Shown here one piece after another: positions 1,100 through 64,000 of a DNA stretch of 64,000 nucleotides. Below the pieces are notes generated by a model that ran no database searches, had not been told where the DNA came from, and saw only the letters and a program-made list of their open reading frames with translations. The position numbers and the translations under genes are program-made. How positions within the stretch are numbered: the stretch's first letter is position 1; each line of letters begins with the position of its first letter. The DNA is taken from sequence record MW812342.1. One strand, given 5' to 3'.

Positions 1100-1564
1100 A
1101 TGAGGGTCATGCTAATTTGCTTATCGCTGTTGCTCGCAGCGTGTAGCAGCTGGGCACCCGTCAAACCGGCCACTGTCAATACGGAGTGGTCGGTGCGTGA
1201 ACTTGGACCGCCCCCTGTCTATCCGCAAGGGGTTGTAAGTCTGGAAGACCCGCGTTATCGGGCGTGGGTGGCAGACGTTAATGCGTATGCGTACTACGTG
1301 TTCGTGTACGCCCGTAATCTTAACGATTACGCCAGAGTTCACGGGTGGCGGCCACCGCAGGTTGCGCCCATTTGTGAGAAGTTTGATTTGTGGGTGGTTC
1401 ATCCCATACCACAACGCATTACCTTGGACGAACGTGCTCGCCGTCCTGAGGACATCTCACGCGATTTGGCAACGCAGCTCAAGCGCATCCTACTGAACTA
1501 CCGTGAAGATCGTAAGTCTTTCCAAAAAGCATACGAAGCCCACCTTAGCACATGCCTTAACTAA
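1100..1564 (+). CDS. Lipoprotein, putative o-spanin-like
   Basis: Signal peptide with lipobox LLLAAC (Cys15 from ATG 1100); RBS GAGGAG at 1089-1094; Pro-rich periplasmic part with further Cys residues. Confidence 0.55.
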   Translation: MRVMLICLSLLLAACSSWAPVKPATVNTEWSVRELGPPPVYPQGVVSLEDPRYRAWVADVNAYAYYVFVYARNLNDYARVHGWRPPQVAPICEKFDLWVVHPIPQRITLDERARRPEDISRDLATQLKRILLNYREDRKSFQKAYEAHLSTCLN

Positions 1565-1568
1565 ACAC

Positions 1569-1607
1569 GACACCTATTCCTTCGGGGGTAGGTGTCGCTT
1601 TATTTTT
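1569..1607 (+). terminator. Intrinsic terminator, UUCG loop
   Basis: Hairpin CGACACCTATTCC-TTCG-GGGGTAGGTGTCG followed by a T-rich tract after the lipoprotein stop. Confidence 0.8.
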
Positions 1608-1632
1608 ACACAACCAACCCATCTAATGTATA
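1603..1632 (+). promoter_or_regulatory. Putative middle-class phage promoter TTTTTACA-N14-AATGTATA
   Basis: Same bipartite motif and 14-nt spacing as at 9431 and 17948; the ATG-like core lies 27 nt upstream of the exonuclease start. Confidence 0.6.
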
Positions 1633-1651
1633 CCCACAGGAGAGTTTAATC

Positions 1652-2407
1652 ATGACCGAAGTCACCCCAACCAAACGCACGCCGAATATCTTCGATGCAC
1701 CCGATATCCATATCCCGACCATCGTTATCGGCATTGATGCCGAAACCAAGTCAACCCGTGCCGATGCGTATCCGGTTGCTATCGGGGCAGGGGCGTGGGA
1801 CATCGCCACTATGCGTCTTATCGCTACGCATTATCAAACCATCGACCCGAACGATGAGAAAGCCAAGGCCATCTTCCATGAAGATCCGTACACCATGGCA
1901 TGGTGGCGTGGCGAAGGGGATAACCCTGACTACGCACCGTCGCGTGAAGCGTACGCCGAAGCCTTCTCCGGCACGATGCCGATGCCCGAAGCGCTCTGGG
2001 GGATGTACAACTTCCTTGAGAAGTTCAAATCTCACAAGGTTGCACTGACTATGCGCGGCCCAGAGTTTGACCAACCGATTCTGATGAACGCGTTTGCCCA
2101 GTGTGATGTCCCAACGAGTCTCTTAAAACGTTTCTCAATGTTGGACTCTGACCGGACGGCCGAGCGTATTATGCACGCCTTCAACCTGACGCCGGACTAC
2201 CGTGCGGAGTCACACAACTGGACACGCGGGAAAGACGCTTATCTGCACCATGCCTGTTTTGATGCGGCGCGTGAAGGTTACATTACTGCTCGTATTTATC
2301 ACTTAGCGTTGATTGCACGTCTGCACGGCTTTGACCGTATGCTGGAAGCGCACAACCAACTGATGACCGGTGAATATACGGCTGTGGATTATCTGAGAGA
2401 GGAATAA
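1652..2407 (+). CDS. DEDDh 3'-5' exonuclease (DnaQ-like)
   Basis: ExoI IGIDAET, ExoII RGPEFDQPIL, ExoIII HHACFDA; RBS AGGAG supports ATG 1652. Confidence 0.85.
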   Translation: MTEVTPTKRTPNIFDAPDIHIPTIVIGIDAETKSTRADAYPVAIGAGAWDIATMRLIATHYQTIDPNDEKAKAIFHEDPYTMAWWRGEGDNPDYAPSREAYAEAFSGTMPMPEALWGMYNFLEKFKSHKVALTMRGPEFDQPILMNAFAQCDVPTSLLKRFSMLDSDRTAERIMHAFNLTPDYRAESHNWTRGKDAYLHHACFDAAREGYITARIYHLALIARLHGFDRMLEAHNQLMTGEYTAVDYLREE

Positions 2408-3927
2408 TGGACGTTAAAGAGTACGATCATGTCGTCGTCTATACGGACGGTAGTCGTGTGGGCCCTCCTAATGGTACGGGGGGCGGTATCCATGGATACG
2501 CTTTCAACAGTGGGGTGTTAAATGAAAACACCCCATACAGCCTGCCGGACGTAGAGGAGTGTGTCACGACCAACGGGTACAAGAAGTTCCCGAAGGACAT
2601 TAAGAAGCCCACGGTACCCGAAACAGTTGATTTCTTTGACTGTGTAATTCCCGTTCCGGCGGAGTTCTGGTCAGACGTGGCAGAACTGATGGCATTTATC
2701 AGTCTCTTTGAAAACTCACCCATTCTTGCCAAGAACTACACCATCTATATTGATGCGTCATACGTGGTCAACGCGTGGAATGATTGGATGGATGGCTGGC
2801 GTAAGCGCGGTTGGACGAAAGCAGACGGTACCCCGATTGCTAACGTGAATCTCATCAAGAAGATGGATGAGATTAAAGCCCGCTTGCGTCAAGAAGGCCG
2901 TTCTATCCGCGTGATCAAAATCAAAGGCCACGCAGGGTTCTACGGTAACGAGCGGGCGGACATGATGGCGCGTAAAGCCTCGTCAATGGTCGCGGCGGGG
3001 CAAGGGGTTGAGTACCGTCCGTTGTGGAGTGTCTCCGGCGAGCTGCCAGCAGAACCCGAAGCTGAGGTGATGGGTACTGACGGCAGTTTACTCAACATGC
3101 CGAAAATCACCAACACGAAGTTCTGTTATCCGTTGGTGAATGAAGAACACCCGACCATGACCATTAACGGCGAGAGCTGGAAATACATGTTCGGTGGGAA
3201 CCACGCAAAGAACAAGGAAGATATCGTGTTCATCGGGAAGATGATTCCCGATGCGCAGTTTGCGGTGTTCCTGAGCAAAGAGGGTTGGGATAACGTTTAC
3301 CAGTTGGTCAATAAGCACAACGAGCTGGCGTGGGATAATGTTCCACCAATGAAGCGTTACGACCCGATTGCCATTGTGTACAACACGATGATTAAGCGCA
3401 AGAAGTTCCAAGATGCCGCCAAAGAAGGGTTGCCGGTTAACCTGATGAAATTCAGTGAAGACGGTAACCTGTGGCTATATGAAGACCTTGCGATTACCCG
3501 TGTCGTGCGCCCTGCGCTGCTTTCTTACCGTGCGTTGGAAATCCGTGATGAACTGGCTGCCTTTTTGCGTGACGGCGTAGAAGACCGCCCAAGTGTTGTG
3601 CTGAACGATATCACTCATCTGCTGTTCGATGAGAAAGACAAACCGGTGAAGACCTTCTACCGTAATGTCGATGTCAGCTTCAACGTGAAGGTGAATTACC
3701 CCGAAAGTGACAAGCAGATTCCGATTATCCTGACTCGTAATATCGACATGCCGGATCGTACCGACATGAACCGTATCATGGAGCCTGGCGGTAAATGGTA
3801 CGTGGCTTGTCGTCGTCCCCAGAAACGTTGCGTGGAATTTGCTGTGGTCTATATCGGTAAGGAGTACCATGGACTGTGGTGTGGCTATTATGCCAACAAA
3901 CGCATCCTGAAAGAAGAGGAAGTGTAA
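2407..3927 (+). CDS. rnhA: Ribonuclease HI with long C-terminal extension (phiKZ gp155-like)
   Basis: RNase HI motifs VYTDGS, AELMAF, IYIDASYV, W..RGW.KADG.PI.N, IKGHAGFYGNERAD; TAATG coupling to the exonuclease. Confidence 0.92.
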   Translation: MDVKEYDHVVVYTDGSRVGPPNGTGGGIHGYAFNSGVLNENTPYSLPDVEECVTTNGYKKFPKDIKKPTVPETVDFFDCVIPVPAEFWSDVAELMAFISLFENSPILAKNYTIYIDASYVVNAWNDWMDGWRKRGWTKADGTPIANVNLIKKMDEIKARLRQEGRSIRVIKIKGHAGFYGNERADMMARKASSMVAAGQGVEYRPLWSVSGELPAEPEAEVMGTDGSLLNMPKITNTKFCYPLVNEEHPTMTINGESWKYMFGGNHAKNKEDIVFIGKMIPDAQFAVFLSKEGWDNVYQLVNKHNELAWDNVPPMKRYDPIAIVYNTMIKRKKFQDAAKEGLPVNLMKFSEDGNLWLYEDLAITRVVRPALLSYRALEIRDELAAFLRDGVEDRPSVVLNDITHLLFDEKDKPVKTFYRNVDVSFNVKVNYPESDKQIPIILTRNIDMPDRTDMNRIMEPGGKWYVACRRPQKRCVEFAVVYIGKEYHGLWCGYYANKRILKEEEV

Positions 3928-4682
3928 TGCGCAAGGTATTCAGTGAAGTCTTAACGATGCACACGGATAGCCTGATGAAGGGGTTGTGTGATTACGCATA
4001 CATGACCTACATCAAAGGGCGCGCCGAGGTGGGGATTGGCGACGCAATACCGAATTTCGATTGTGCGGCAATCAGTCGTAAAGCGATGGCAGAAGTGGTA
4101 GCCCAGTTATTGATAGATGCGATTGCTTCCATCAACGGCAACACTGGATACGATTTCCATCAACGTTTGATGATTCCTCGTGTTCCAACTGCCAAATACA
4201 AAGCGTGGCGGGAATCAGGGAACTGTGGGATGTTCACCATCGAAGAGATGTTTGACGCCCACTGTCGTGAACTCCCCGCATCCGAGCTAGTTATCGGCGC
4301 AATGAAATGGTACACCACCCGTTTCGTGGATGAGATTTACAATCTCTTCGGCAGTGATGACCAAATCGGTTGGGAAGGCGCGGCGGTTATCTTTACGCAA
4401 CGCGACATGTTGGTGCAGCAGATATTGGATGATCGCGTTTGTCTGGCGTTGCTGGAGCACGGCGACTACGAGTTTGCTGCCGAGGCGGAAGACATTGCAG
4501 ACTTGCGCGATGAACTGTTCCAGTGGCCATTCTCTTTTGTGATGCAGGACGACATTCGGGCGCTACAAGAAAGTATCCCGACGTATATCCTGCCCGCAGA
4601 AGACCAAGACTCTGAGGAAAAACTGGGGGTCGAACTCTACGTCTTAAAACCGGAGGTTATTGATAAAATCAAAAAACTCTGA
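3927..4682 (+). CDS. Hypothetical acidic protein
   Basis: 251-aa ORF, TAATG-coupled start at 3927 rather than 3876; no recognised motif. Confidence 0.75.
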   Translation: MRKVFSEVLTMHTDSLMKGLCDYAYMTYIKGRAEVGIGDAIPNFDCAAISRKAMAEVVAQLLIDAIASINGNTGYDFHQRLMIPRVPTAKYKAWRESGNCGMFTIEEMFDAHCRELPASELVIGAMKWYTTRFVDEIYNLFGSDDQIGWEGAAVIFTQRDMLVQQILDDRVCLALLEHGDYEFAAEAEDIADLRDELFQWPFSFVMQDDIRALQESIPTYILPAEDQDSEEKLGVELYVLKPEVIDKIKKL

Positions 4683-4685
4683 GAT

Positions 4686-4702
4686 AGATATTATCTTGGT
4701 GA
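4686..4702 (+). promoter_or_regulatory. Putative early (virion-RNAP) promoter AGATATTATC-N4-TGA
   Basis: One of five copies of A(G/T)ATATTA(C/T)C-N4-TGA; resembles the phiKZ early TATATTAC motif. Confidence 0.65.
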
Positions 4703-4724
4703 GTAGTCTATAAGGAGTATCAAC

Positions 4725-5459
4725 ATGCTTCGTGTCAACACCCCCGAACTCCTGCTCTTTAACCCCTCGCTCGTCGAGGGGTTGTTCGACAAGATGTGGG
4801 AGCGGTACTTTAGAGAGGAGATGAATTCTGACCCGTGGTGGGAACGCTATCGTGGTGACTTCTTTCTGGACTCTTCGCAGATTACGCTGGACGTGTTCAG
4901 CCGGTGTGTGGAGGAAGTAGTACAAGCTGCAAACTTGCGTCGTCCGATGGACTTCAATTACATCACGTTTGATTTTTCATGGTACATGGACAATTACAAC
5001 TACGAATGTGATTTGGGGATAGATGACCAAGAGAAGATTGAAAACAAAATGTTTGATTTCTTCCACTTTGCAATTAATCAATTGGTTTCGCAGGAGTTCT
5101 TAGATGCGGCATGCAAACGACTGACCCCCACATGGGAATCCTTAACGGAACTCGTGGGTCAACGTGGCATTGTGGGCTTCTGGTACGAACCCTGTCAAGG
5201 CCAGCTGCACATGGACTCAGGACGCGACCACGTCTGGGCAGTGCAAGAAGGGGATTACGACGCTGAGCTGTATGCCGAATGGCAAGGTGCGGTGGCAGGC
5301 ACACTCTTTTACCACGCCACCATTGGCGATGGTAATGAGTTTTATTTATTTAATGGGTCGCTTATCCAAGACGGACAAACACTTGACCACATCCCCCTTG
5401 GGGAGATGGTGACGCTGTGTCGTCTGACTGAACAAGCACAAACTACAATTGACCTTTAA
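4725..5459 (+). CDS. Hypothetical protein (likely early)
   Basis: 244-aa ORF, RBS TAAGGAG, downstream of early promoter motif. Confidence 0.8.
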   Translation: MLRVNTPELLLFNPSLVEGLFDKMWERYFREEMNSDPWWERYRGDFFLDSSQITLDVFSRCVEEVVQAANLRRPMDFNYITFDFSWYMDNYNYECDLGIDDQEKIENKMFDFFHFAINQLVSQEFLDAACKRLTPTWESLTELVGQRGIVGFWYEPCQGQLHMDSGRDHVWAVQEGDYDAELYAEWQGAVAGTLFYHATIGDGNEFYLFNGSLIQDGQTLDHIPLGEMVTLCRLTEQAQTTIDL

Positions 5460-5471
5460 GGAGTATCTACC

Positions 5472-5840
5472 ATGAAACTTGATCAAGCTATCCAACAGTA
5501 TGTTACCCAATTTGACCGCCATGGTCTGTTCCTGCTGCGCTTCACTAACGAAACTCAACTGCTGGAACACAACCCAAAAACGTTCGCAGTCGTGTATGAG
5601 AACGACGGTATCGGTGAGCCGGAGCGTATGACACTGCGTAAACTGCGTCAGGACGCCATCGAAGCCAAGGTCGTTCATGTACAGCCGGTTGTCTGTGCCC
5701 AAGGTTGGCCGGGTAAGCTCGATGTCGAAGCGGACGTGGTATTGAATGTCGTGCAAGACGGTGATGCTCGCCGACTGGTGCCGGTAAAATGGCGTACTCT
5801 CGATACCCTGCCAGACGCCGTTGAATTCACGGAGCTGTAA
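5472..5840 (+). CDS. Hypothetical protein
   Basis: 122-aa ORF with RBS TAAGGAG in a tight operon. Confidence 0.8.
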   Translation: MKLDQAIQQYVTQFDRHGLFLLRFTNETQLLEHNPKTFAVVYENDGIGEPERMTLRKLRQDAIEAKVVHVQPVVCAQGWPGKLDVEADVVLNVVQDGDARRLVPVKWRTLDTLPDAVEFTEL

Positions 5841-5842
5841 AT

Positions 5843-6583
5843 ATGGATATGCGTCCAGTCAGGTTATACCTGCTGACGGCGCTTCACGATCACTTGATGC
5901 GTCTCGGTGAGGCGCATCATATCGCGAAGACAGCATACCTGATGATTGCGCGAGAAATCGCGCGATCTGACTTACGCTGCCGTCACAAATGGTTGTTAAC
6001 GGATGTGTGTGAACGTTTGAAACAGCAAGTGGTCGGGGGCCAATCGCTCAACCATGCTCTATCCTACGTTTGGGTTTACGATGACATTCGGGACGAGATG
6101 TACGTAGATAATGCGCATCGTGTTGTGAAACTAATCGAACGGGTGACGAACGATTACTACGCAACCACCGGCGGGCTGACAACGGAGGTGAATATCCAAA
6201 GCACCATTTTGGATTCGCTTCGTGAAACGGCCAATCATCTCGATGCCCCCATTCTTTTTTCTACCGACTACGACCTGTTGCGTTTTCGTATCTGGTTTAC
6301 GGGGGAAATGGATGACGTCGATATGCACGAGTTGTGGTGTCATGACGTGCACAGCATGGACGAATGGACTGGCCTCCTTACGACCTACCCATCGGAGAAG
6401 TACCTGTGGCGGCAAGATCACGAGCCGTTAATTCCAGAACGTCTGAATGATGAAGGTTACGACGTCGAAGCATTCTGGAAAAATATCTCGATTCTCAGTT
6501 TGGACAAGCTCTACGTTATGGCGAAGGAGCGTCTGTGTTCCGAGGATGACGACCGATGCGAACTGTACACAGCTATGCACTGA
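5843..6583 (+). CDS. Hypothetical protein
   Basis: 246-aa ORF abutting its neighbours. Confidence 0.75.
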   Translation: MDMRPVRLYLLTALHDHLMRLGEAHHIAKTAYLMIAREIARSDLRCRHKWLLTDVCERLKQQVVGGQSLNHALSYVWVYDDIRDEMYVDNAHRVVKLIERVTNDYYATTGGLTTEVNIQSTILDSLRETANHLDAPILFSTDYDLLRFRIWFTGEMDDVDMHELWCHDVHSMDEWTGLLTTYPSEKYLWRQDHEPLIPERLNDEGYDVEAFWKNISILSLDKLYVMAKERLCSEDDDRCELYTAMH

Positions 6584-9430: not shown

Positions 9431-9461
9431 CTTTTTACGGTTAAGCCCTGTGTTATGTAGA
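9431..9461 (+). promoter_or_regulatory. Putative middle-class phage promoter CTTTTTACG-N14-TATGTAGA
   Basis: Both boxes identical to, and spaced as, 17948-17978; upstream of the uvsX operon. Confidence 0.7.
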
Positions 9462-56297: not shown

Positions 56298-58409
56298 ATG
56301 ATATTACGTGAACGTGATTGGGGTTTTTATCCGGGCGCTTTGGCGGATGATACCACCAAGAACAAACACTTTATGTATTTCGCCGATACTTTAAAAGGAC
56401 TCGGTGTAAAGCACTGGTATTTGCATCTTGCACTTCTCGACCCGGAACTGCAAGGTGTTGATCCGCACGACCCACACCTGACTGTTGAACAACAGGCGCG
56501 TGTGATTGCAGAATGTGCACGTAACCCATGGTACTACATCCGTGAATGTCTGCGCGTTCCTGCGGATGGTACTGACGGTGTACCCTTTAAGATTGACCGC
56601 GGTAACTTTGCGATGTTTTGGATCTTCTTCAACAACATCGACGTGGCCATCGAATTCCTTCGTCAGCACGGTAAGACTGTCGGGATGTGTTCGCTCCTGA
56701 GCTGGCTGCTGCGTTTTCTTGAAAAGTCACGTACGATTCTGGTCACCAAAGGGCCGGTGCTGCGTGAGGAAACCATCACCAAACTGAAAGAGCTGCGGAA
56801 CTGCCTGCCGAAATACCTGTGGCCTATCCACCCGGATGACCCTGACAACAAGGAAGCCTTTGCGTGTATGGCGCAGGGCAACAAACTGATTACCGCGATT
56901 GGTCAGAACGATGAGCAATCTGCAAACGGTGTGGGCCGTGGTCTAACCGCCGGTCGTCTGTTCTCGGATGAGGGCCCCTTCACCAACAACATCCACATCA
57001 TTCTTCCGGCCGCACTGGCATCCGGTACGGCCGCCCGTAACATCAACGAAGAATCCGGTGTGCCTTACGGTAACGTGTTCGCAACAACGCCCGGCGATCT
57101 GGCAACCCCGGAAGGTCAGTACATGTACGACCTGATGACCTCGGGGATTAACTGGGATGAGCGTTACATTGATATCCCAACCCGTCAGCAGTTGATTGAC
57201 CTGATTCGACACAACTCCACGTCGAAGATGCCACGTATCATGTTTTACGCGAAGTTCAACCACCGACAACTGGGTACCTCCGATGCGAAGCTCGCAGACA
57301 TGATTGCGAACGCCACGGGTAGCCCAGACCAAATCCGCCGTGACTTCGGTGGTGAATGGACAACTGGTGGTTTCAACAAACCGTTCTCCGGTGACGATGC
57401 CCGTCGCATGAACGGCTCGCGTATGCGTGCCACGTACAAAGATATCAGTCCGGCCAACTACATCACCGATTGGTATTACAGCGAAATGGAGATGGCGACG
57501 AAACTCCACGACCGCCACATCATCGGACTGGATACGTCTGAGGCAGTAGGTCGAGATGCGATTGCGATGTCGATTGTCAACTCGGTCACAGCGGAGTATG
57601 CCGGGAAGATGACCGTGAACGAAACCAACGTTATCGGTTTTGCCATTCACTTGGCGGACTTCATGGAGCGCTTCCCGAATACGGTACTTATCCTCGAGCG
57701 TAAGTCGACCGGTTCGTCGGTTGCGGATGCTATCATCCTTCAATTGCAATCCCGTGTTCGTGACTTACACCGCCGTCTGTACGTCAGGATAACGGACACC
57801 AACAGCCGTAACGACGATTTGTATAAGGAGTATGCTCGCGGTCCGGCAGGTGGTAACGCTGAACGGTTCTGGGACAAATTCCGTAAATACATTGGCTTCA
57901 CTACGGACGGCGATAAACGTCGGAAATTATATGGTGAGGTCTTCACCATGGCTCTCCGTTTATCAGCCCACTTATTACGCAGTGGCGAACTCATCGACCA
58001 GATCCTTGGTTTGGTGGAGCGCAGCGGACGTATTGACCACCAGAAATCCGGTCACGATGACTTGGTCATTTCTTGGTTACTGGCAATGTGGCTGCTCTTG
58101 TTTGGTAAGAACCTGAACCACTATGGGATTACCAACAACCGGCTAATGATTCGAAATCGCAATATCCTTGTAGGTGGAGATGTTACTGGAGACGAGGACG
58201 CGATGGTTGAAGAGGAGGAGAAGCAACAGCAACTGATGGGTGAGATTGAAGAAGTGATGAAACAAAGTGTGGGCGTGACGTGTCCTGTTCGCCAAATGAC
58301 CTTGCGTAATCGCCTCCAGTCCCTTATCGCTCAACTTAACACTGATATGCGCAACGTCGCATCGATGGAAAGCTTGAAAGAGCTTATCCAACGCCAGAGG
58401 ATGAAGTAA
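56298..58409 (+). CDS. terL: Terminase large subunit (phiKZ gp25 / SPN3US gp260-like)
   Basis: NPWYYIRE, Walker A RQHGKT, Walker B FSDEG, ATTPG (motif C), nuclease GLDTSEAVGRD and HDDLVISWL. Confidence 0.95.
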   Translation: MILRERDWGFYPGALADDTTKNKHFMYFADTLKGLGVKHWYLHLALLDPELQGVDPHDPHLTVEQQARVIAECARNPWYYIRECLRVPADGTDGVPFKIDRGNFAMFWIFFNNIDVAIEFLRQHGKTVGMCSLLSWLLRFLEKSRTILVTKGPVLREETITKLKELRNCLPKYLWPIHPDDPDNKEAFACMAQGNKLITAIGQNDEQSANGVGRGLTAGRLFSDEGPFTNNIHIILPAALASGTAARNINEESGVPYGNVFATTPGDLATPEGQYMYDLMTSGINWDERYIDIPTRQQLIDLIRHNSTSKMPRIMFYAKFNHRQLGTSDAKLADMIANATGSPDQIRRDFGGEWTTGGFNKPFSGDDARRMNGSRMRATYKDISPANYITDWYYSEMEMATKLHDRHIIGLDTSEAVGRDAIAMSIVNSVTAEYAGKMTVNETNVIGFAIHLADFMERFPNTVLILERKSTGSSVADAIILQLQSRVRDLHRRLYVRITDTNSRNDDLYKEYARGPAGGNAERFWDKFRKYIGFTTDGDKRRKLYGEVFTMALRLSAHLLRSGELIDQILGLVERSGRIDHQKSGHDDLVISWLLAMWLLLFGKNLNHYGITNNRLMIRNRNILVGGDVTGDEDAMVEEEEKQQQLMGEIEEVMKQSVGVTCPVRQMTLRNRLQSLIAQLNTDMRNVASMESLKELIQRQRMK

Positions 58410-61959: not shown

Positions 61960-62604
61960 ATGACTAACTTCACCCGCGTTGAATCCCTGAAAGCTGTACT
62001 TCCATCCGATTTCGAGTCAGCGTTCTTGGAGGCCATTGACCGTGTCGAAAACGTGGCCAGTGATTCGGCCATTCTCACCCGTTGGGTATTGATGAACGAA
62101 GGGCGTCCTGAGAAGGTCGCTATGGCCCTTCAGGAAGGCAACAACGTGACGTTCCCCTTCTTCCTAGGGGTTACCCTTCCTGAGATGGAAGACATCGCCA
62201 AAGCGGCTTACAGCGACGTTAAGCATGTGGTCGTCTTTACCAAAGACCAACTGCCGAATGCGGAAGGCTGGCGGATGCTCACCTGTAACTACACCCCGCT
62301 GAAGAAATTCACCACCGACCAACCGTACACTGTCACGAAGAAAGAGGGTGGCGTGCTGGCTGAGGTTACTACCGTAGTAGGTGGTGCACTGATGGTAATG
62401 GCACCGGGATGTAGTGCGCTGGTGTTGGGCGACGAACAGCCGACTGACCAAGTCTGGGCATTGGTTGAAGAACTTGCAGCCGTCTCAAATGCGGAGGGTC
62501 TGGAGTTCTCAGTACAAGCCATGAATCCACAGTGGTCAATGCTGTTGGATGAGCATCCTGACTACGACCTGAACAATGTCACCTTGGCAAAAACCATCCA
62601 CTAA
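61960..62604 (+). CDS. Hypothetical early protein (monocistronic)
   Basis: RBS GAGGA at 61948-61952, ATG 61960; own promoter and terminator. Confidence 0.8.
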   Translation: MTNFTRVESLKAVLPSDFESAFLEAIDRVENVASDSAILTRWVLMNEGRPEKVAMALQEGNNVTFPFFLGVTLPEMEDIAKAAYSDVKHVVVFTKDQLPNAEGWRMLTCNYTPLKKFTTDQPYTVTKKEGGVLAEVTTVVGGALMVMAPGCSALVLGDEQPTDQVWALVEELAAVSNAEGLEFSVQAMNPQWSMLLDEHPDYDLNNVTLAKTIH

Positions 62605-62610
62605 AAAACG

Positions 62611-62637
62611 GGGAGCTTCGGCTCCCTATTTTTTTTT
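62611..62637 (+). terminator. Intrinsic terminator, UUCG loop
   Basis: GGGAGC-TTCG-GCTCCC plus long T-tract. Confidence 0.9.
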
Positions 62638-62734
62638 GTTTTTTGTTGTCCGGCGGTGATGTCCCGCCTGAAATTGTACACTTTTTAACCATGGGGCAAA
62701 TTCGCTCTAAAACGGTTTCTGAGGTGCCTCATTA

Positions 62735-62929
62735 ATGACCCAGTACACTTGGGTTCCCACTACCCCATTCGTGCAGCAGGGAATCGTACAGCGCGAAATT
62801 GGACGGGTTGCAAATCGGTTTCCGGGTGCAGGGCCGACGGCGCGACCGCCGATGCCGATCAAACGTTGGGGTGCGCTTGCGCGTTTTCAGGATCAAATAC
62901 GGGAATTCAGGGCAAACGAATCTTCGTGA
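62735..62929 (+). CDS. Possible 64-aa small protein
   Basis: GAGGTG about 9 nt upstream of the ATG; no homology cue, may be spurious. Confidence 0.3.
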   Translation: MTQYTWVPTTPFVQQGIVQREIGRVANRFPGAGPTARPPMPIKRWGALARFQDQIREFRANESS

Positions 62930-62959
62930 GTTTGGCTGAATTTGGTTGTTTTTTAACCA

Positions 62960-63280
62960 CTCACTCTCCCCGGCTCCTAGCCGGGATCGAGATCGACTTA
63001 ATTTAAAAATTTTTATTTTAAAAACAATCACTTAAACCAGATCCTGCCCCCGATCCTGAACCCCCTCTGGGGTTCAGTTAAAAAGTCCTTTCATTATACG
63101 CGTGCACGCGCACGCCATTTCCTACAGGATCTTTTAAAAGAATTAATAATATTATTAAATATATATATCCCGTAGGGATAATATTAATAATTAAATATAT
63201 ATAAACCCTACGGGTTTTAAATAACTAACGCGCGTGATCCTTATTACGAGATCTGATCCGGGAACCGGGGATCGGGGGTA
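62960..63280. other. Origin-like non-coding locus: AT-rich core, nested inverted repeats, GATC cluster
   Basis: AT-rich 63132-63230 core; CCCGTAGGG (63169-63177) and its reverse complement CCCTACGGG (63206-63214); CCCCCGATCC (63047-63056) / GGATCGGGGG (63269-63278); nine GATC in 62985-63273. Confidence 0.55.
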
Positions 63281-63284
63281 AGTC

Positions 63285-63310
63285 GAATTACAAGTTTTCC
63301 CAGTTCTATG
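63285..63310 (+). promoter_or_regulatory. Putative middle-class promoter GAATTACA-N14-TATG
   Basis: Same TAC-N-N14-TATG geometry as 1603, 9431 and 17948, but no gene start within about 30 nt. Confidence 0.45.
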
Positions 63311-63722
63311 CACGACGAACCAAACGCTTGCCCGAATCATCCTCGGGCCTTTTTCGAGAATCCACGATGCGGGTTCTGGACAAAGCCAGCGGGACAGCCT
63401 AACACTTCCCAACGCGTTTCAGGTTTCGGTCAGCGACTCGGACTTCGCATTCCGACGAGACCGGTACCGTGGTAGCCTCACGGGAGACTCACCGCTTTCG
63501 GGCCGTCACCCGATACGACGCCATGGAACTTACCCGTGGCCTGCGTGTGAACTCTCCCTGGGGTGTGACCAAATTCGAATTCGGCTTGCGGCCGATACCC
63601 GTACACGGTTTAGCCCCGTGTACACCGGAGTAATCTCCAACGGGAGGTTGATCCACATCTTGGCGGCTCGGAAAGACGAGAGGGGGATGTCCCCACGCTG
63701 TGAAGCGCTGGGATGTCGCTGA
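63310..63722 (+). ncRNA. Candidate structured ncRNA or long 5' leader
   Basis: Series of short stable hairpins (63330-63348, 63521-63539, 63601-63623, 63632-63649, 63692-63712 with GTGA GNRA loop) between a promoter motif and the RBS of 63749. Confidence 0.35.
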
Positions 63723-63748
63723 ATTAAATTCTAACCAGGAGTGTGACC

Positions 63749-64000
63749 ATGTCTGCCATGACGCTTGAAGAACTCATGCCTACCCGTATGCCCGACCCAG
63801 TGACTTTCCCACGCAACGGTGAACCGGTGCCTGTGGCCGACGTGGTTGCTTGGTTACGCACCGGTTGCCCGAATATCCACCACCTGACCGCCGCAGTCCT
63901 CGAAAAACATTTCGAGACGGTTGCCTTCCAGCCATTCCCCAACGAACTGGCTATGGCCGCTGTGGGTAAACTCAAACCCGAATGTGGGAATTACCACATC
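63749..64000 (+). CDS. Hypothetical protein, partial (runs off right edge)
   Basis: Not in ORF track. RBS AGGAG, ATG 63749, stop-free to the window end (MSAMTLEELMPTRMPDPVTFP...). Confidence 0.75.
   Translation, partial: MSAMTLEELMPTRMPDPVTFPRNGEPVPVADVVAWLRTGCPNIHHLTAAVLEKHFETVAFQPFPNELAMAAVGKLKPECGNYHI

Follow-up and report, generated by a model that had tools for sequence, protein, structure and literature searches.

An A/T-rich, GATC-ringed intergenic element conserved among SPN3US-like jumbo phages is a candidate lytic replication origin

The last 64,000 bp of sequence record MW812342.1 (here called the window; window position = record position minus 174,920) belong to the 238,920-bp genome, recorded as circular, of the Erwinia jumbo phage pEa_SNUABM_10, a member of the genus Machinavirus that is now placed in the Chimalliviridae, the nucleus-forming jumbo phages. 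The window contains an intergenic spacer of about 1,144 bp (62605-63749) with an A/T-rich core (63132-63230) that is set between two boundary blocks and ringed by GATC sites. Comparison with related genomes supports the view that this is a unique cis-acting DNA element under strong selection, and our first-ranked reading, which we advance tentatively, is that the core and its two invariant boundary blocks form the unwinding element of a lytic replication origin. Phages of this group initiate replication within a protein shell that probably keeps host factors out. The original prediction for this locus, made from the sequence alone, knew of no defined origin for this phage group, and the literature that we searched bears this out, since it describes no origin, pac site or methylome for the group and defines no origin or packaging site for any nucleus-forming jumbo phage.

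Results

The core is the least stable duplex of the genome

No 100-bp duplex in the 239-kb genome is less stable than the core, which has a nearest-neighbor ΔG of -100.3 kcal/mol against a genome mean of -142.1 kcal/mol per 100 bp (standard deviation, 6.4). This places it 6.5 standard deviations below the mean in stability and 9.5 kcal/mol lower than the runner-up minimum (-109.8 kcal/mol). The most A/T-rich 80-mer of the genome also sits in the core (69 of 80 positions are A/T; the next best has 62). A global minimum of duplex stability is what an unwinding element should show. The core had been called almost pure A/T: it is indeed A/T-rich, but its A+T content is 82% in pEa_SNUABM_10, short of purity because its two palindromes carry G and C. 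The direct repeats, the mini-hairpins with reverse-complementary centers, the outer inverted repeats and the flanking hairpins that had been reported are all present at the coordinates given here. The direct repeats, TTAAATATATATA, start at 63155 and 63191; the rest of the window holds only one loose match (two mismatches at most), and the element, whose repeats are found nowhere else, is single-copy. The two mini-palindromes, TATCCC-GTA-GGGATA (63166-63180) and AAACCC-TAC-GGGTTT (63203-63217), have centers that are mutual reverse complements.

The left boundary block (63087-63136), invariant in all five clades compared below, consists of CCTTTCATTATA, an alternating purine-pyrimidine GC tract (63097-63115) and the invariant edge TTTCCTACAGGATCTTTTA, which includes a universally conserved GATC at 63128. 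The right boundary block (63226-63279) comprises a GC tract followed by GTGATCCTTATTACGAGATC and then by more GATCs and G-runs (GGGGATCGGGGG).

The edges of the element are invariant across five clades

Conservation in relatives had been named as a check on the original prediction, and it proved extensive. We compared Machinavirus proper (Huxley, Machina, Parshik, pSal-SNUABM-04, pEa_43 and pEa_6), the Caitlin/ChrisDB/pEa_9 clade, Erskinevirus (phiEaH2, Stratton and Asesino), Seoulvirus (SPN3US-like SaP7, SPAsTU and pEa_29), Wellington-like phages and several metagenomic contigs, using cross-genus alignments (A2, A3 and A4) whose variable parts are only approximately aligned. A homologous spacer occupies the identical syntenic position in every relative examined, that is, in at least five clades, and the edges of the element are invariant over five clades. 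The constant skeleton runs from a GC-rich alternating purine-pyrimidine tract through the invariant edge TTTCCTnCAGG(G)ATCTTTT, the A/T core and a second GC tract to GTGATCyTTATTA and then a phage promoter; the right-edge motif GTGATCyTTATTA is kept in all clades but the ChrisDB/pEa_9 branch. Across clades the core is 63 to 106 bp long and 83 to 96% A+T with a divergent sequence, whereas the edges are sequence-invariant. A core constant in composition between edges constant in sequence is what one would predict for DNA that melts between sites bound by proteins. In blastn comparisons between genera, the non-coding blocks alone are detectable, the adjacent protein genes having diverged past DNA-level detection. 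A search of IMG/VR with the 17-nt pattern of the left edge, in which 16 bases are specified, returned mostly chance matches and was abandoned.

The mini-palindromes change in sequence but keep their symmetry and their distance from the left edge (about 42 to 46 nt and 83 nt), with the variants TATCCC-GTA-GGGATA, TAATATC-TTTA-GATATTA, ATAATACC-TTTA-GGTATTAT and TACTAC-GTA-GTAGTA. SPN3US has only one of them and the Wellington-like phages have none, from which we conclude that they are accessory. Further from the core, a phased A-tract/T-tract block (62998-63035; TTTAAAAATTTTTATTTTAAAAACA..ACTTA) has invariant columns across genera (alignments A2 and A4), a GC-rich hairpin (63056-63077; CTGAACCCC-CTCT-GGGGTTCAG) is clade-variable in sequence and visible as a hairpin in most relatives (alignment A2), and the outer inverted repeat (CCCCCGATCC, 63047-63056, with GGATCGGGGG, 63269-63278) is conserved only in close Machinaviruses.

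A GATC cluster is maintained in a GATC-depleted genome that encodes a Dam homolog

Eleven GATC sites lie within 417 bp (62857-63273), seven to the left of the A/T core and four to the right. This count agrees with the original prediction, which underestimated the clustering: this is the top GATC cluster of the genome. GATC is depleted in the window (140 sites observed versus 260 expected from dinucleotide shuffles) as in the whole genome, where 435 sites give an observed/expected ratio of 0.36 under a second-order Markov model, a 2.8-fold depletion; GATC and CTAG, tied at 0.36, are the most depleted 4-bp palindromes. About 0.8 sites are expected in 417 bp, so that the 11 observed correspond to a Poisson P of about 2e-9, or about 3e-7 when corrected for window positions, and the second-best 420-bp window genome-wide holds six. 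The enrichment is specific to GATC, the other palindromes enriched at the locus being A/T-only ones. Eight of the 11 sites stand in a GGATC context, and four of the 15 genomic copies of the heptamer CAGGATC fall in the locus, two direct and two inverted (62888 and 63125 on the + strand, 63040 and 63052 on the - strand), one of them being the invariant left edge. In the relatives, individual GATC sites turn over, and a cluster of 8 to 11 around the core persists in most clades, against just 0 to 5 sites in the flanks of about 1.5 to 3 kb.

These data bear on the simplest alternative, namely, that the element has no function and is a compositional accident of a non-coding gap. The general tendency of intergenic DNA to A/T richness, and nothing more, speaks for such an accident, which would explain neither edges that stay invariant over five clades while the neighboring genes are beyond DNA-level detection nor a GATC cluster with a P of about 1e-7 that is maintained through site turnover. 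We regard this alternative as effectively refuted.

The phage encodes a Dam homolog (record positions 98256-99077, outside the window) that is annotated there as hypothetical; it aligns with E. coli Dam at 39% identity over 271 residues (E = 1e-60) and carries a DPPY motif. Its gene is syntenic in all clades examined, including the one with a thinned GATC cluster. GATC sites can therefore be methylated by a phage enzyme of predicted GATC specificity, and methylation of the GATC sites at the locus is plausible given the homologs in the phage and its relatives, as is the involvement of Dam that had been suggested. tblastn searches with the E. coli SeqA and MutH proteins gave no match in the phage genome at E values up to 1, and host Dam and SeqA probably have no access to DNA inside the chimallin shell of the phage nucleus. 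Any reader of the methylation state must be an unrecognised phage protein. In the Caitlin/ChrisDB/pEa_9 clade the cluster is down to two to four sites, and most of it must therefore be dispensable there; loss of Dam was ruled out as the explanation, since Dam is retained in this clade.

A predicted phage-type promoter faces outward from the element

Two promoter classes were derived from the phage's own genome. Class A (AAA..T.TcAGATAkATATTAyCT..GTGA) is represented by 16 exact matches to its seed and, in all, by some 25 position-weight-matrix sites, every one of them on the + strand; the sites that we inspected follow terminators and stand about 50 nt ahead of ribosome-binding sites. Twenty-three well-supported sites score at least 28.9 bits and two weaker ones 17 to 19 bits, and the window holds five sites (4669, 13417, 45919, 60100 and 61876), with some 20 more elsewhere in the genome. 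Class A is probably the early (virion RNA polymerase) promoter class of the phage, an A/T-rich type that is on record for every jumbo phage encoding an RNA polymerase (PMC7598289). For class B (TTTTTTAC-N15-TRTG) we counted 39 sites in the genome versus 12 expected, 30 of them on the + strand. This class combines features of the phiKZ middle promoters (A/T at -24) and late promoters (TATG at the start site) (PMC7598289), which are of the non-virion RNA polymerase type. In the window it is found on the + strand at 9435, 17952 and 63288, the others lying elsewhere in the genome.

The class-B promoter at 63288-63310 (TTAC-N15-TATG, + strand) has a predicted start at about 63310 and is directed away from the core. 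The pattern detected a class-B promoter in 13 relatives, each time at a distance of 47 to 70 bp from the right edge; it returned none in the two Wellington-like contigs, yet TTTTTTAC-N15-TATG is visible there by eye. The core itself was rejected as an ordinary promoter. Its repeats reach 11.3 and 6.9 bits against the class-A matrix (rank 26 genome-wide), too low a score, and lack the conserved class-A flanks (AAA...T.T upstream and CT..GTGA downstream); the core has no class-B motif, the number of sigma-70-like matches in it is what A/T richness alone gives, and no promoter of a known class reads into it.

The promoter opens onto a new predicted structured RNA

The class-B promoter is followed by a predicted large structured RNA of about 420 nt (63310-63732, + strand; the extent is predicted). 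With 12 sequences from five clades, RNAalifold yields 67 consensus pairs, 26 to 27 of which show compensatory double changes, and the RNA is closed by a long-range helix between two invariant blocks (63350-63358 with 63667-63675). Of the cells at paired positions in the alignment, 94.6% are paired, versus 34 to 52% when the partners are slid by one to three columns, and G-U pairs make up 149 of 804 cells. The consensus energy favors the + strand (-61.8 versus -35.3 kcal/mol). Rfam covariance models gave no match at E values up to 1 for pEa_SNUABM_10 and four relatives, and ARAGORN found neither a tRNA nor a tmRNA. A resemblance to conserved regions of RNase P was not supported by covariance models. 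The invariant 24-mer of the RNA occurs in no GTDB bacterial genome and only in these phage contigs. This is a new family of large structured RNAs found only in SPN3US-like jumbo phages, and the RNA and the A/T element always co-occur in the relatives.

In Seoul- and Erskineviruses the RNA extends to as much as about 550 nt and has additional modules. Their non-coding tract, of about 940 nt, apparently includes units in tandem, every unit having a class-B promoter to itself and one of them a terminator. There, an extra RNA module of about 250 to 400 nt, with its own class-B promoter and terminator, lies between the A/T core and the conserved RNA. The upstream half of the spacer is longer in Seoulviruses by an extra insert of about 190 nt, and in Wellington a further insert of about 600 nt separates core and RNA. 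A natural deletion of about 135 nt in pEa_SNUABM_6 (pEa_6), equivalent to window positions of about 63478 to 63611, apparently occurred between the short repeats GTAGCC and TTAGCC and removes an internal sub-domain; it would be explained by a dispensable sub-domain, by an RNA that is not active in pEa_6, or by an assembly artifact.

This close association of element, promoter and RNA suggests a second-ranked reading, which we consider distinctly less probable than an origin: the locus would be a methylation-sensitive control region, in which the core and its GATC flanks act as bent or looped upstream DNA with sites for phage regulators that switch the class-B promoter and the RNA. Such a methylation switch could, for instance, separate injected genomes, which are fully methylated, from those that have just been replicated. 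The promoter keeps its distance of 47 to 70 bp from the right edge in every scorable relative, the RNA is always present with the element, the phage has its Dam homolog, and four GATCs fall between about -40 and -75 relative to the predicted start, which is the usual position for regulators that compete with Dam, as at pap, agn43 and IS10. Nevertheless, the A/T stability minimum and the seven GATCs reaching 450 bp upstream exceed anything seen at the other 38 class-B matches, and the ChrisDB/pEa_9 branch is without promoter-proximal GATCs, yet has kept both promoter and RNA.

The terminase gene lies upstream of the spacer

The gene for the large terminase subunit, TerL (56298-58409, + strand; PHROG phrog_2, E = 4e-62), lies 4.5 kb upstream of the element. 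The PHROG profile match covers mainly the first 240 or so of its 703 residues, and the remainder has no Pfam match. Between TerL and the element lie four unrelated genes, of which two have an early-type (class-A) promoter ahead of them, and no small terminase was recognised.

A packaging role ranks third, and we think it unlikely. On this reading the terminase would recognise the GATC-flanked element as a pac site on concatemers and make its first cut there, licensed by Dam as at the pac site of phage P1. Sternberg and Coulby are said to have described for P1 pac a layout in which GATC groups flank a central region, and the two GATC groups around a center of about 100 bp, together with a phage Dam, match it. 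A single-copy element 4.5 kb from the TerL gene also suits a pac site. Headful packaging has been assigned to this group from its terminase homology alone, and convention fixed base 1 of the records (PMC6256631), which leaves room for a pac site here. At the sequence level the likeness weakens: the TGATCA/G hexamers of P1 are not enriched (one TGATCR in the spacer versus 0.6 expected), and the GATCs, although in two groups, have other contexts (GGATC, as noted, in 8 of 11). In addition, the four intervening genes separate the element from the terminase gene, no small terminase was recognised, and packaging could do without an extreme A/T melting region and without an outward promoter in tight linkage.

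Surroundings of the element in the spacer

The spacer is the genome's largest tract without a credible gene or tRNA, and in this sense the description of the locus as gene-free holds, but the tract is not empty: it holds the phage-type promoter, the covarying RNA and the hairpins on the left. It lies between two + strand genes, one ending at 62604 and the other starting at 63750. Its left end is a bidirectional intrinsic terminator (62610-62640, both strands, from terminator-scan scores), kept in all relatives, that closes the gene ending at 62604; the T-runs on each side of 62610-62627 could also halt leftward transcription leaving the spacer. The annotated 64-amino-acid open reading frame pEaSNUABM10_00282 (62735-62929, + strand) is probably spurious, its start codon not being kept even in close relatives. 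More generally, a coding role of the spacer was rejected, because the annotated reading frames differ between records (some have none), lack a conserved start or frame and are split by 1-nt indels between close relatives.

An upstream conserved non-coding module (62668-62997, + strand) has invariant islands and a few covarying hairpins (alignments A4 and A6). It includes a locus-specific repeat, TTTTTAACCA, at 62683 and 62951, an invariant hairpin, GACCCAGTACACTTGGGTTCC, at about 62739-62759, and covarying hairpins at about 62873-62884 and 62968-62984. Its G-U pairs favor the + strand, and no convincing global fold was found for the module as a whole. The sequence TTTTTAACC was rejected as a third promoter class, being present in this locus only and not genome-wide. 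Downstream of the spacer, across the record origin, there are small genes and a cluster of 13 annotated tRNA genes (record positions 1256-6288); just past the window end there are also genes for an HslV-like peptidase (388-876) and for a member of the TerB-like tellurite-resistance family (1859-2284).

Discussion

We identified in pEa_SNUABM_10 and its relatives an element that is single-copy, has the genome's stability minimum at its center, is constrained at its edges and in the composition of its center, and is accompanied by GC clamps, a GATC cluster with a matching methylase and an outward promoter. Together, these properties indicate a cis-acting element whose center melts or bends and whose edges bind proteins. 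Of the functions that could be served in this way, initiation of lytic replication appears to us the best candidate, even if a tentative one. It is supported by the stability minimum and the A/T-richest 80-mer, in a single-copy element lying in the largest non-coding tract at a syntenic position. A GATC cluster maintained against genome-wide depletion, with a syntenic Dam homolog and 4 of the 15 CAGGATC heptamers, and a tightly linked outward promoter in every scorable relative likewise count in its favor, as do the constraint on composition alone in a core between invariant edges, the persistence of DNA-level similarity between genera in the non-coding blocks only, and the failure of the core repeats to score as ordinary promoters.

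Our working model is as follows. Phage proteins would bind the conserved edges, and perhaps also the CAGGATC heptamers and the core palindromes, and the A/T tract of about 100 bp, bounded by GC-rich alternating tracts, would then melt. Outward transcription by the non-virion RNA polymerase from about 63310 may assist melting through the negative supercoiling left behind the polymerase or, alternatively, through an R-loop. The phage's own Dam would methylate the GATCs ringing the core, and the fully methylated, hemimethylated or unmethylated state of these sites would mark whether a copy has just been replicated, which could time re-initiation or later steps. Initiation at the element, methylation of its GATCs and reading of their state are all proposed here from sequence features.

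Several observations weigh against an origin at this locus. We recognised no replication initiator gene next to the element and no classical iteron array in the locus. The spacer has no exact DnaA box (TTATNCACA) and a single one-mismatch copy, versus 0.1 and 0.9 expected from the genome-wide rate, and no oriC-type 13-mer (GATCTnTTnTTTT) with up to two mismatches; the invariant GATCTTTTAAAAG shares just its first 9 bases with the oriC 13-mer. The analogy with enterobacterial, Dam/SeqA-controlled origins that was drawn in the original prediction therefore fails at the sequence level, since DnaA boxes and GATC 13-mers are lacking, as are SeqA and MutH in the phage. IHF sites are not in excess in the spacer either. 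Single-strand folding gives the core no unusual stability (z = -1.3, not significant), which rules out exceptional hairpin stability. The linked promoter is directed away from the core, unlike those at the T7 origin or at T4 oriF/oriG, which fire through it. The GATC cluster is thinned in the Caitlin/ChrisDB/pEa_9 clade, in which Dam is retained, and the mini-palindromes are missing from the Wellington-like phages. Finally, the cumulative GC skew rises almost monotonically with no switch at the locus; since GC skew tracks gene orientation and is confounded by it, we consider it uninformative as an indicator of an origin.

Other roles at the DNA level have also been considered, such as a centromere-like site, an anchor to the nuclear shell or spindle, a hotspot of recombination or resolution, or an insulator between transcription units. 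Unique, conserved, palindrome-bearing DNA in a nucleus-forming phage family would suit such roles, and Seoul-like phages reportedly persist in cells at a copy number of a few (10.1101/2024.12.31.630880), which would require maintenance functions. As we saw neither partition-type repeats nor partner genes nearby, and nothing specific favors an anchor, a hotspot or an insulator, we consider this group of roles improbable. A more elaborate proposal goes beyond the origin itself: the locus could be a compound region, comparable to an oriLyt, in which the new RNA is functionally coupled to an unwinding element marked by the phage Dam, the RNA serving as activator, primer or licensing factor and methylation distinguishing injected, replicating and packaging-ready genomes, and it would then be the first identifiable lytic origin of a nucleus-forming (chimalli-) phage. 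We put this forward as a speculation about as doubtful as the packaging role.

The locus is the best candidate yet for the place where this phage group starts copying, or possibly packaging, its DNA, and it offers a precise, conserved, single-copy target of about 180 bp in several tractable phages, namely, SPN3US in Salmonella and Machina, Huxley or pEa_SNUABM_10 in laboratory strains of Erwinia. It would also give the conserved phage Dam a concrete job, which may explain why GATC is purged elsewhere and kept here. If the element is an origin, it would also be relevant to the way in which Seoul-like phages, as reported, persist at low copy number in isolates of bacteria. The adjacent 420- to 550-nt RNA, a new structured family with a long-range closing helix, is of independent interest.

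Comparison with known systems places the element among several types of cis-acting DNA. Its core repeats weakly resemble the AGATAkATATTAyC motif of jumbo-phage early promoters, which are likewise A/T-rich over about 10 nt; unlike such promoters, the repeats score far lower and lack the conserved flanks. The origin of E. coli, oriC, has 11 GATC sites in 245 bp and is activated by outward flanking transcription (gid), and it shares with the phage element an A/T-rich unwinding region, a dense GATC cluster and a Dam encoded in the same genome. In contrast to oriC, the phage element has neither DnaA boxes nor GATCTnTTnTTTT 13-mers, SeqA and MutH are missing from a genome that is otherwise GATC-depleted, and replication takes place inside a protein shell from which host factors are probably excluded. 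The pac and oriR sites of phage P1 are Dam-dependent cis elements at which the methylation state gates a DNA transaction, and P1 resembles pEa_SNUABM_10 in having a phage-encoded Dam and a unique GATC cluster in two groups around a center. Differences from P1 are the lack of TGATCA/G hexamers and 7-mer repeats, the position of our element outside any pacase or rep gene, its much more A/T-rich center, and its linked promoter and RNA.

The primary origin of T7, oriF/oriG of T4 and the R-loop origins of the ColE1 type, like the element described here, couple a promoter (that of the phage polymerase in T7 and T4) tightly to an A/T-rich unwinding element. R-loop origins carry G-runs that stabilize the hybrid, and G-runs also lie beside the A/T region in many relatives. 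Unlike in T7, T4 and ColE1, the A/T tract has the recognisable promoter on its downstream side, directed outward, and G-runs are not universal: those after the last GATC are missing in SaP7/SPN3US, pEa_29 and the Caitlin clade, and we rejected them as a universal R-loop signal. Lastly, there is a functional analogy with the oriLyt of herpesviruses, large double-stranded DNA viruses that replicate in the nucleus. It implies no evolutionary relationship, and the present evidence does not indicate a role of the RNA in initiation, but in the complex, 1- to 2-kb non-coding region of oriLyt, as in the spacer of pEa_SNUABM_10, an A/T-rich palindromic core stands beside a promoter and a non-coding RNA.

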